56,930 bases of DNA from Macrostomum lignano (Eukaryota), in NCBI GenBank assembly GCA_002269645.1, contig NIVC01004170.1:1-56930 (forward strand), read 5' to 3'. A program made the translations under genes and the position numbers. The notes beneath the pieces are model-generated. The model did no database searches. It had not been told where the DNA came from and saw only the letters and a program-made list of their open reading frames with translations. Shown piece after piece: positions 22,785-56,860 of this stretch; position 1 is the stretch's first letter; each line of letters begins with the position of its first letter.

Positions 22785-25700
22785 TCAACTCAGGACAGCA
22801 GGGCGGAGCTGGAGCCTCTCTGGCTGTCCGACAAGCTGCCCGATGAAGGCGCGCCTGCGGCTGCCGGCTGCCGGGGGCCTTCGCTGCGGGCGGCATTCAG
22901 TTGCTAGGCGGTTATTGCGAATGAGTCCGATTGCAATTTGAGACAGTTGGGTGAATGAGTGAACCAGTCAGCTAGTGAGTGAGTGAGTGGATGAGTGAAT
23001 AAGTGAGTGAGTGAGTGAATGAGTGGATGAGTGAATAAGCGACTGGGTGGATGAGTGAATAAGTGAGTGAGTGAGTGAGTGAGTGAGTGGATGAGTGAAT
23101 AAGCGAGTGAGTGCATGAGTGAATAAGTGAGTGAGTGAGTGAGTGAGTGAAGGGATGAGTGAATAAGCGAGTGAGTGGATGAGTGAATAGTGAGAGCTCA
23201 CCGGACTTCAGAGACAGGTGGGCGCCAGAAAAGCTGTCATCATCCTGAAAGCGCGGATTGACGGCCGCGGTGTCCTCGGCTGGCGCGGCAGCCATTCGCA
23301 GTCGCTGCCGATTCCGCCGCCAGCTGCGCAGCCGCCAGGCCAGGTAGAGGCAGATGGCGATGGCCGTTACGGCGCCGGCGGCGGAGACCACGCCCAGGCC
23401 AACGCCGAGCAGGAGGACTTCGCCGCTGCTCGGCGGCTTCTGCTGCAGCGGCTCGGCGGCCTCAGGCAGCGGCGATTCGAGCCTCGAGCTGACAGGCGTC
23501 GTGTCGCTCGGGCTGGCGCCGCCGGCCTCGGCCTCGGCGACAATGGACGCGGCCAGCTCGGCAAGGATGCGGCGCTGGGCCTCGGGCAAAGACTCCAGGC
23601 TTGGCGGCTCGGCCTGCAGCTGCACCTGGGACGCCCGACTGCGAGACACGTCCAGACTGGCGGACACGGCGACTGGGGAGGGGAGGACAGGTGTAGAGAC
23701 AGACAAGCAGTAGATGGACAGGCAGAGACAGACAAGCAGTAGATGGACAGGCAGACAGACAAGCAGATAAAAAAGACAAGCCGAAACTGGTTAAGCAAAG
23801 ACATTGAAGGCATTACAAACAGGCGGCCAAGCAGCATGGCAGGTGCGTTAAGTTCAGCTCAGACTCACCGCTCAAGGAAGTCATCGGATGCCCGCCGGAA
23901 AATTCTGCATTGAACAGCAGCAGCCCCTTGTTGAACACTCGCTCCACAGTGGCTTGATTGAACAGGCTGCTCTCGGCCGTTGAGAAAGTCATTGTGTACT
24001 TTGCAAAGATTTTAGTCTGCTCGCTGCAAGGTTGACAAGCGGAAAGAGGCTGGTGAAGAAACTCCGGGGAGACGAGAGAGGGCACGGGGAGACGAGGGAG
24101 GGCATGGGGGGACAAGAGAGAACGGGGAGACGGTAGAGTAGGCCACTGGAAGGCATAAAACAGGCACAGCAAGACATGCACTGTTAATAACAATTTGGGA
24201 AGAGGGGGGTCGATTTCAATCCCACTTACGTTCCAGACAGAGCAAAGCTGCACGAACAATTGCTGATAGCAGACGGAGTTTCAAAGTTATAGATGAAGCC
24301 GATCTAGAATAAAAAAACGAGGATTCTGTAAATAATTAACATAAAAAATTGAGAGCACTTGGCCAATGATTTTCCTCATCCGAGTCTCAGAATTTGGCTT
24401 ACACTATCGCAGACAAAGTTCTGCGTGAACTCTCTGGAGAATTGGGCGCCGGCCGCCGCGGCGTCGCCGGCAAAGCCCAGTCCAGAAATCTGAAGCTGGT
24501 GCTCCAGGCGCATGATGCGAATTGGCGGGCCGGACGGAGCAGAGAAGGCGCCTAGCGGCCCTGCGAAGAAGGGGAATTGGTTGATTTAAGCTGCGGTGAC
24601 CTTTAAGGTCAATTTATATTTTCACACCGTTTTTAAGCGGAAAAAAGCTTGCAGATGTACATAGGGCCGTTTAAGGGGAGGACTGACCGGTCTGCGTACA
24701 TCGCTTTTATTTCATTACCCTCGCCTAGTGCGCGGGCCGTGGCCCAGCGGGGGGTTGTTTGGCCCACAGATTTTTAATAGCTGGCGCTGCCATGTACATT
24801 CTCTGCCCCTGTACATTGATCTTGGAAAACCCCTTTCTCTTCCTCTACCCCCTCCCCCTAGTCATTTTATTTAATCCAAGCGAGCAGACAAACAAATCGC
24901 TTAACCAAATTAAAAGCTTTTCCGTGAACCATAGAATTCTAGATTACTACTAGTAATCTAGAACTGTGAATTTTTCGGGTCATTTTTACAACACAAGTTC
25001 GAAACTAATAGTTTTTCATCGAAATCTGATTTTAAATCTTAATTTTTTGGAGCGATAATTCCTGCAGAAATAACATTAACCTGCACTCAGAAAAAGCAAG
25101 TTAAAAAAGCAAATACAGATGATAATTCCGGGATTGGAAGACGGTTCGAAATCGATCTTTTTTTCAATAAATAGGTCAATTTCTGTATTTTTATATACTT
25201 GCAAGTAAAAAAGTCGTTTTTTCAAGAATATAAAAATACACCTTAAATTAGTCTTTTCATAAAGCTCAAAGTTTTGGTGAGAACGAAAACGTGAAATGGG
25301 TGGAATCTTATTTTTGTGGCTTTTCAAAAAGACAGCCTCAAATTCCCAATCGCAGCGGACTCACAGTTCATGTGGATCACATCGTAGGCTGTTCTAACGT
25401 CCGACAACAGGGCCAAAACGTCGTGATCCAGCTGCGCGTTGAGCAGGCCAATTTTGGAGACGATGCCAATTGCGAATTTGTTGCTGAGGGCAGGGGTAGG
25501 AATGGTATGAGAAAAATTCAAATGCTTTAGACTATTTCCGAGCAAAGTCCGCAAGACCAGCTCAAGCTCACCTAGCCAGTTTGTCAATCGAATAGGCTTT
25601 AACACCCAGAGCAGAATAGTGCCGTTTTGCTCCGAAAGCAGTCTCCAACTGAAAGTGTCAACAGGCATCTGGGCATTGAATTGAATACAGCTGAGCTCTC

Positions 25701-56860: not shown

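Follow-up and report, generated by a model that had tools for sequence, protein, structure and literature searches.

The stretch of DNA analysed here, called the window throughout, is positions 1-56,930 of contig NIVC01004170.1 of the flatworm Macrostomum lignano. Two UniRef proteins of this species, P0001 (A0A1I8IT96, 1,809 amino acids) and P0002 (A0A1I8IPX5, 1,647 amino acids), map back to it exon by exon at ~95-100% identity, which places the window in the M. lignano genome. Its composition is ~50% G+C and it is dense with minisatellites, one of which lies in nearly every intron of the gene described below. On the minus strand, the open segments from 56.9 to 22.6 kb resemble protein exons, and the large minus-strand gene that they form at 56828-22657 is, judged from the DNA, real. 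We give about an even chance to the reading that this is one lineage-restricted giant gene, coding for a type I single-pass surface protein of >3,100 amino acids whose ectodomain would be a chain of alpha/beta domains.

The first UniRef matches came from a rough concatenation of the minus-strand open segments. Exons were predicted using codon log-odds trained on clear exon cores, followed by a dynamic-programming chain with GT[AG]AG donors and YAG acceptors. Run without homolog input, this chain recovered the exons of P0001 exactly, with model residues 272-1331 (1,060 amino acids) 100% identical to P0001. Six small exons were corrected using P0003, P0004 and P0005, M. lignano models that cover the 3' half and were obtained in a second homolog search. 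The curated model places 44 exons on the minus strand between 56828 and 22657. Its 9,420 coding bases, spread over 34.2 kb, encode 3,139 amino acids with no internal stop; when a candidate cassette exon (30915-30508) is left out, 43 exons and 3,003 amino acids remain and the frame is still open. All 43 exon junctions are phase-compatible. The donors are GT in 43/43 cases (GT[AG]AG in 32 of them), the acceptors are CAG in 43/44, and the median intron length is 377 nt (shortest 52, longest 3,421). The match to a further UniRef model, P0006, shows that the coding sequence extends 5' beyond the window end. Two exons proposed by the dynamic-programming chain, 30856-30674 and 29585-29407 as first joined, were rejected, an in-frame stop being the result. 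The cassette exon is compatible with the strong acceptor at 29516 only; the weaker acceptor at 29585, which would add a strand-like segment, KVLNELDYISIKIQLNIVFISA, is incompatible with it.

The first-pass annotation of this locus had joined ~43 exons without stops into >3,100 amino acids, an estimate that agrees with our model, and had seen in them a giant membrane protein; the continuously open model with its one transmembrane helix reads as a single long gene for a protein that crosses the membrane once. The limits that it had given, 22785-56860, located the gene correctly but missed both ends, since the last exon ends at 22657 and coding goes 5' past 56860 and past the window; its 22785 end corresponds to where the paralog models stop. 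The model contains all seven peptides that it had quoted, most of them close to or at the beginning of an exon. As the gene is not annotated whole, and public protein sets split and mis-name the locus, the corrected model is useful in itself. Its features are as follows, with the source of each in brackets.

56835..56897, minus: first visible exon, its upstream part, KNGDHYYTMHHKNNAFELEVL (tblastn of P0006, 87.5% identity; out of frame with exon 1)
56666..56828, minus: exon 1, residues 1-54 (prediction; the P0006 C-terminus matches; the gene goes on 5' of the window)
54686..54923, minus: exon 2, residues 55-133 (prediction only; CAG acceptor, GTGAGT donor, phase compatible)
52691..52872, minus: exon 3 (P0001; alternative in-frame acceptor at 52917)
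51068..51296, minus: exon 4 (P0001, P0002)
50298..50690, minus: exon 5, module 'a', residues 271-401, the modelled module (identical to P0001)
49466..49900, minus: exon 6, module 'b', DATGLAFKANYVL... (P0001)
48634..49074, minus: exon 7, module 'c', VGSQLQFRTQYTIQ... (P0001)
47450..47753, minus: exon 8 (P0001)
46843..47199, minus: exon 9 (P0001)
46185..46449, minus: exon 10 (P0001)
45005..45123, minus: exon 11 (P0001)
44857..44933, minus: exon 12 (P0001)
44551..44753, minus: exon 13 (P0001)
43747..44205, minus: exon 14 (P0001, 100% identity)
43467..43594, minus: exon 15 (P0001)
43394..43414, minus: exon 16, 7 amino acids, doubtful (prediction only; P0001 is without it)
42393..42484, minus: exon 17 (P0001)
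42170..42321, minus: exon 18, LSFSISYELIASHRFNIGENILRIF (P0001)
42014..42085, minus: exon 19 (P0001)
41172..41359, minus: exon 20 (P0001)
40869..40957, minus: exon 21, start of the bridging model P0004 (P0001 and P0004, 100% identity)
40614..40786, minus: exon 22, LAVETYYILL...TATMVEAIF (P0001, P0004)
39956..40259, minus: exon 23 (P0001, P0004)
39288..39720, minus: exon 24, 145-amino-acid module carrying the sole furin-type site (P0001, P0004; motif scan)
39486..39509, minus: RSSRRRRS, residues 1766-1773 (regular-expression scan)
38453..38748, minus: exon 25, 3' part uncertain (P0001 and P0003 differ in frame)
36664..36959, minus: exon 26 (P0003, P0004)
32692..33242, minus: exon 27 (P0003, P0004, P0005)
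32316..32401, minus: exon 28 (P0003, 100% identity)
31607..31746, minus: exon 29, INLRYQIVMRRGGLSAVTVRQYIL (P0003, P0004)
30508..30915, minus: candidate cassette exon, 136 amino acids (acceptor taacag, donor GTGAGT, three-frame view)
29407..29516, minus: exon 31 (UniRef models; alternative AAG acceptor at 29585)
29217..29305, minus: exon 32 (P0003, P0004)
27867..28018, minus: exon 33, FLQFKAKYSLSVSNASVSKEEVHKTF (P0003, P0004)
27341..27459, minus: exon 34 (guided by UniRef models)
27159..27226, minus: exon 35 (guided by UniRef models)
26301..26461, minus: exon 36 (guided by UniRef models)
26074..26219, minus: exon 37 (guided by UniRef models)
25572..25648, minus: exon 38 (guided by UniRef models)
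25365..25483, minus: exon 39 (guided by UniRef models)
24403..24560, minus: exon 40 (guided by UniRef models)
24230..24303, minus: exon 41, sole TAG acceptor (guided by UniRef models)
23869..24023, minus: exon 42, IFAKYTMTFSTAESSLFNQATVERVF, start of the last pre-membrane module (P0003, 98% identity)
23202..23672, minus: exon 43, end of the last module, Pro/Ser/Glu-rich stalk, transmembrane helix and start of the tail
23335..23418, minus: transmembrane helix VLLLGVGLGVVSAAGAVTAIAICLYLAW, residues 2993-3020, then RLRSWRRNRQRLR at 23334-23296 (read from the sequence)
22657..22883, minus: exon 44, cytoplasmic tail and stop codon (the paralog models stop near 22788)

The hydrophobic helix at residues 2993-3020 is followed by the basic stretch RLRSWRRNRQRLR and a tail of ~120 amino acids. 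According to the positive-inside rule, a basic stretch after the helix makes the tail cytoplasmic, so the large N-terminal part would be extracellular. The product is a membrane-anchored single-pass protein, in type I orientation by that rule. Its candidate cassette exon encodes 136 amino acids rich in Ser, Thr, Ala and Pro and is of phase 1-1, so that it can be skipped without a change of frame; the UniRef gene models omit it, and it may provide an O-glycosylated spacer in some transcripts. A scan of the protein for R-x-[KR]-R found exactly one site, RSSRRRRS at residues 1766-1773. By eye, exon 24, which carries it, reads as strand, helix, strand, a 30-residue loop with RRRR, strand, helix and strand, and the site looks like part of a long beta2-beta3-like loop.

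Our searches for relatives returned M. lignano sequences only. Pfam contained no family for ten exon translations or for P0001-P0005, with no SEA match even at E<=10, and the few sub-threshold matches all fell on repeat-derived intron read-through. Using phmmer, the whole model had 0 matches to PDB sequences at E<=1, and the 1,060-residue segment retrieved the M. lignano cluster alone from 1.84 billion representative proteins. Word-indexed homolog searches yielded M. lignano models, and one aimed at the upstream part yielded nothing. The literature on Macrostomum with SEA domain or glycocalyx contained nothing on this gene. The domains named in the UniRef titles (VWFD, PDDEXK_1, VPS13, protein kinase, ANF receptor and FH2) were rejected; because Pfam finds no such family in P0001-P0005, the titles misdescribe these proteins. 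To the extent that sequence searches can tell, the protein is an orphan and lineage-restricted, and giant orphan surface proteins are not rare. The first-pass annotation, which had recognised no EGF, Ig, cadherin or vWA repeats and had proposed an ortholog search, was right about the repeats, for Pfam finds nothing, and that search gave no known ortholog. At the profile level, when ten motif-bearing segments were built into a profile (A1) and compared with PDB sequences, MutH at E=1.8 was the only match. With hhalign, the module alignment A3 reached a probability of 0.4% against the SEA domain of MUC1 and gave no signal against ribosomal protein S6.

The ectodomain carries a recurring strand-helix pattern. 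Defined strictly, as an alternating-hydrophobic 9-mer followed within 4-18 residues by an amphipathic 14-mer, it occurs 6 times, as compared with 1.8 +/- 1.3 times in 300 shuffles, whose maximum was also 6; alternating strands alone number 28, as compared with 21 +/- 3.8. In many exon-sized pieces the strand-helix segment comes first, and an unguided MAFFT alignment brings these segments into register. Tests of similarity among the modules gave little. Self-BLASTP of the protein found no internal similarity at E<=100, a seed hidden Markov model (HMM) trained on one half and tested on the other revealed no internal repeats, and an HMM from ten motif instances retrieved its own members only. When these ten instances were left out one at a time, there was one clear recovery, the instance in module 'b' (exon 6; 5.9 bits, the shuffle maximum being ~0.5), and a second, marginal one inside the shuffle range. 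For 18 modules, the MAFFT sum-of-pairs score and the hydrophobicity correlation with the target were no better than for shuffled modules. A secondary-structure predictor of our own, based on Chou-Fasman and hydrophobic-moment values, was discarded as too crude. Judged by these statistics, the pattern exists and is modestly above chance, but it is not evidence of module homology, and the sequence tests do not show the modules to be one tandem family.

Structure prediction was informative for one module. Given the 1,060 amino acids as a single sequence, AlphaFold2 produced no usable model (mean predicted local distance difference test, pLDDT, of 32). For module 'a' (residues 271-401), the other internal modules were supplied as the alignment (A3), with paralog versions in the rows that cross exon junctions. 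The resulting model has a mean pLDDT of 77.5, a predicted template modelling (TM) score of 0.67 and the order beta-alpha-beta-beta-alpha-beta (strand 5-15, helix 26-40, strand 44-53, strand 64-75, helix 89-105, strand 119-130). Its two long helices coincide with helix positions in the independent single-sequence run above, whose low-confidence 1,060-residue model has a helix roughly every 60 residues, a spacing that suits two helices per module. The ferredoxin-like beta-alpha-beta-beta-alpha-beta fold is a class that includes SEA and SEA-like domains.

Foldseek searches of the PDB with module 'a' returned 14 matches at E<=1e-3, all of them ferredoxin-like among those recognised. The best E-values belonged to a designed ferredoxin, IS200/IS605-type transposases and M20 peptidase dimerisation domains (3e-4 to 1e-3; probability 0.9-0.99), with ribosomal protein S6 and MoaC just weaker (1.2e-3 to 1.5e-3). 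Rank 12 was chain 'a' of the dystrophin-glycoprotein complex. The SEA domain of MUC16 (8vm1_A) had the top query TM-score, 0.50, among the best 50 matches and stood 38th by E-value. Based on this model, module 'a' is probably ferredoxin-like, and SEA domains are among its predicted structural neighbours without being singled out; it is plausible to read one module as SEA-like, whereas a SEA-like array is unproven.

The first-pass annotation had gone further, proposing many tandem SEA-like modules in a mucin-like protein. The recurring strand-helix pattern that it described is present, but only modestly above chance, and the modules are as highly diverged as it stated, whereas their membership of one tandem family found no support in the self-BLASTP, HMM and shuffle tests. 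It had likened the pattern to the second half of a SEA domain; in module 'a' the pattern falls on beta1-alpha1, that is, on the first half, and the other peptides were placed by eye. The SEA-like modules gained a ferredoxin-like prediction with a MUC16 SEA neighbour for module 'a', but no SEA sequence signal. The AlphaFold and Foldseek analysis that it had suggested gave a ferredoxin-like result for one module, but TM-scores of <=0.5, with generic folds best by E-value. The term mucin-like would apply to a single 136-residue exon rich in Ser, Thr, Ala and Pro, which existing gene models skip.

In the reading that we favour, the ectodomain would most likely lie outside the cell as a string of some two dozen small alpha/beta domains, each free of disulfides and ~100-150 amino acids long, several of them encoded by single exons. 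The chain would end in the Pro/Ser/Glu-rich stalk, the single transmembrane helix and the ~120-residue cytoplasmic tail, and the 136-residue Ser/Thr-rich exon would add its O-glycosylated spacer in some transcripts. By analogy, such a protein could form a long bead-like filament serving as a surface coat, an adhesion element or a spacing element. Again by analogy, a proprotein convertase could cut inside a folded module at RSSRRRRS, and the two halves would be held non-covalently and separate under force, as proposed for SEA-class domains. What the analysis shows is how the gene is built, that its product has a membrane anchor, that it lacks relatives and that one module has a fold prediction; an extracellular location, a fold shared by all modules, cleavage and a surface function are inferred.

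Several points weigh against this reading. The junctions of exons 1, 2 and 3 are predictions from the DNA. At two G-runs, one in exon 1 and one in the last exon, the window departs from the paralog models by 1 nt, whether through faulty assembly or through genuine lesions. A SEA sequence signal was absent from Pfam, from the PDB profile search and from hhalign. The Foldseek TM-scores were 0.25-0.50 with root-mean-square deviations of 6-10 A, and the fold prediction covers 1 of ~24 putative modules. Moreover, the alignment behind the module 'a' model may carry, as the shuffle comparisons suggest, no real homology signal; because these rows are no more similar than shuffled ones, the gain in pLDDT may only reinforce the target's own hydrophobic pattern. 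The topology is derived from the positive-inside rule, the N-terminus and any signal peptide lying outside the window. N-x-S/T sequons number 24 in 3,139 amino acids, and ~18 would be expected by chance on a rough estimate, so they are not enriched. A regular-expression scan of the whole protein found no G-[ST]-hydrophobic(3) autoproteolysis motif, a motif that is not universal across the SEA family.

The best of the alternatives, which we consider somewhat unlikely, accepts the gene and its membrane anchor and takes the large N-terminal part of the protein for a mix of unrelated or novel alpha/beta folds rather than an array of SEA-like or ferredoxin-like domains. On this view any alpha/beta protein would have a strand-helix pattern such as the one found here, which exceeds the shuffles only modestly; the modules have no measurable similarity to one another, and the exons or modules vary in length from 88 to 184 amino acids. 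The low single-sequence pLDDT of 32 and the generic Foldseek matches, with TM-scores of <=0.5, point the same way. Nevertheless, module 'a' was modelled as beta-alpha-beta-beta-alpha-beta at a pLDDT of 77.5, several exons open with the same strand-helix order, which MAFFT aligned unguided, and the ~60-residue helix spacing of the low-confidence model fits two helices per module.

A stronger version of the proposal is unlikely: an undescribed flatworm-restricted family with an ectodomain of >20 disulfide-free SEA-like domains unrecognisable by sequence, one convertase site and an optional mucin-like exon. If true, such a string of >20 domains would stand beside MUC16 as its non-mucin counterpart, and it would be a candidate for a surface filament that responds to force or is shed. 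With the whole ectodomain SEA-like, this fold would prove able to multiply, beyond the vertebrate mucins, into a giant filament at the cell surface, and such domains would be able to diverge past all sequence recognition. Since M. lignano allows RNA interference and in situ hybridisation, the gene would be a tractable candidate for studies of the surface coat, adhesion and force-dependent shedding.

The public models bear on whether the locus is one gene or several. UniRef tiles most of it with P0006 upstream to exon 1, P0001 over exons 3-25 and P0005 over exons 27-44. P0004, the model of a near-identical copy, spans exons 21-43 in one piece, including the transmembrane helix and the start of the tail. 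Near 56833, a 1-nt difference in a G-run puts the KNGDHYYTMHHKNNAFELEVL piece in another frame than the rest of exon 1; in the three-frame view, an acceptor, ttgctag|AAG, lies at 56897, and the window reads CTGGCCAG where the paralog implies CTGGGCCAG. Compared with P0006, the window shows two compensating frame changes inside exon 1 (SSTTWRLIR against LEHYMETHS). A second G-run difference, near 22835, shifts the frame of the paralog models, which stop near 22788 and have an altered C-terminal tail. P0004 also contains a 71-amino-acid exon (ERSKMAQPRLIDAITKE...RSDQGHGH) with no match anywhere in the window; where it would sit, a 24-bp minisatellite of ~45 copies (28079-29189) fills the intron of the window. 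Past the transmembrane exon, P0004 is the antisense of the neighbouring EF-hand and symporter genes (tblastn, 20161-10741, minus strand), and it is a fused, mis-annotated model.

It is very unlikely, in our view, that the 34-kb model merges at least two genes, or that the genome was recently duplicated and the copy seen here is a paralog in decay (a pseudogene). Such a view draws on the break of the locus into separate P0006, P0001 and P0005 models, on the 1-nt frame differences in exon 1 and the last exon, and on the 71-residue exon of the paralog model that the window lacks. Single-base G-run differences, however, are a frequent assembly error; P0004 bridges exons 21 to 43, a similar type of sequence runs on up to the transmembrane helix, and 43 phase-compatible junctions, consensus splice sites and a stop-free run of 3,139 codons argue for one intact gene.

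A cytoplasmic or organelle-luminal location of the large N-terminal part, away from the cell surface, is highly improbable: the signal peptide is out of view with the 5' end of the gene, cysteine is scarce (0.94% of that part), sequons occur at about the chance level of our rough estimate and many Foldseek neighbours of module 'a' are intracellular ferredoxin-like proteins, but the basic cluster sits C-terminal to the helix, the ~120 residues past the helix exceed those of tail-anchored proteins, SEA domains also lack disulfides, and the Ser/Thr-rich exon and the furin-type site suit the secretory pathway.

Apart from the single giant gene, the window contains exons of a sodium:solute symporter on the plus strand (5400-14300), broken by minisatellites; Pfam assigns two of the exon translations to SSF (PF00474), with E=6e-23 and E=8e-27. 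A calcium-binding protein of the EF-hand type (Pfam EF-hand families, E ~1e-5) has its exons at 17300-18500, also on the plus strand, with a 15-bp minisatellite between them at 17698-18155. Three further repeat tracts are a 72-bp unit x32 (20211-22610), an (AG)n tract of 2.3 kb (33925-36302) and a 14-bp unit x113 (52849-54654). They yield spurious long open reading frames on both strands, for example of 799 and 786 amino acids, which a naive caller would report as genes.

Compared with MUC16-type membrane mucins, the flatworm protein has a single transmembrane helix and a short cytoplasmic tail (~120 amino acids), but neither recognisably similar tandem repeats nor a major Pro/Thr/Ser-rich region. 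With MUC16 (CA125) it shares the architecture of a giant type I membrane protein with an ectodomain built as a long chain of ~120-150-residue alpha/beta modules (predicted in our case), the presence of a Ser/Thr-rich segment and, among the best 50 Foldseek matches, the best query TM-score (0.50) of module 'a', which belongs to the MUC16 SEA domain. The repeats of MUC16 are clearly alike and match the SEA profile, and a huge O-glycosylated region dominates that protein. In contrast, the flatworm modules have no internal similarity and no SEA profile match, a single optional 136-residue Ser/Thr-rich exon stands in place of a dominant O-glycosylated region, and there is no detectable sequence homology between the two proteins.

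For the SEA family (PF01390), the ~110-130-residue beta-alpha-beta-beta-alpha-beta unit was found in the prediction for residues 271-401 only, and the sequence profile did not match; the transmembrane helix with its basic stretch and the Ser/Thr-rich exon are compatible with the extracellular location that this family has in O-glycosylated membrane or secreted proteins. Generic ferredoxin-like folds, such as those of S6, IS200/IS605 transposases and M20 dimerisation domains, have the topology predicted for module 'a', but they are intracellular with unrelated functions, and so common a fold says little about ancestry.

Dystroglycan, alpha-sarcoglycan, the Notch heterodimerisation domain and KIAA1549 resemble our one predicted module in having a beta-alpha-beta-beta-alpha-beta order without a SEA sequence signal, and these divergent domains lie next to the membrane in type I proteins, a likeness to the flatworm protein. 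Furin-type proteases cleave some SEA-like domains, those of Notch and GPR126 among them, in the loop that joins strands 2 and 3 (bioRxiv 10.1101/2025.08.18.670743). The sole R-x-R-R site of the flatworm protein would fall in a comparable loop, as judged by eye. In the structure of the dystrophin-glycoprotein complex, alpha-sarcoglycan has a cadherin-like plus SEA architecture (bioRxiv 10.64898/2026.07.22.740214). These proteins differ from the one described here in carrying one to three such domains beside other types, whereas ~3,000 amino acids of the flatworm protein would consist of such domains throughout; the structural match is also weak, and the loop in the site-bearing module was placed by eye. 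The closest known architecture is that of MUC16, and the closest domain class is that of the divergent SEA-like domains of dystroglycan, alpha-sarcoglycan, Notch and KIAA1549.

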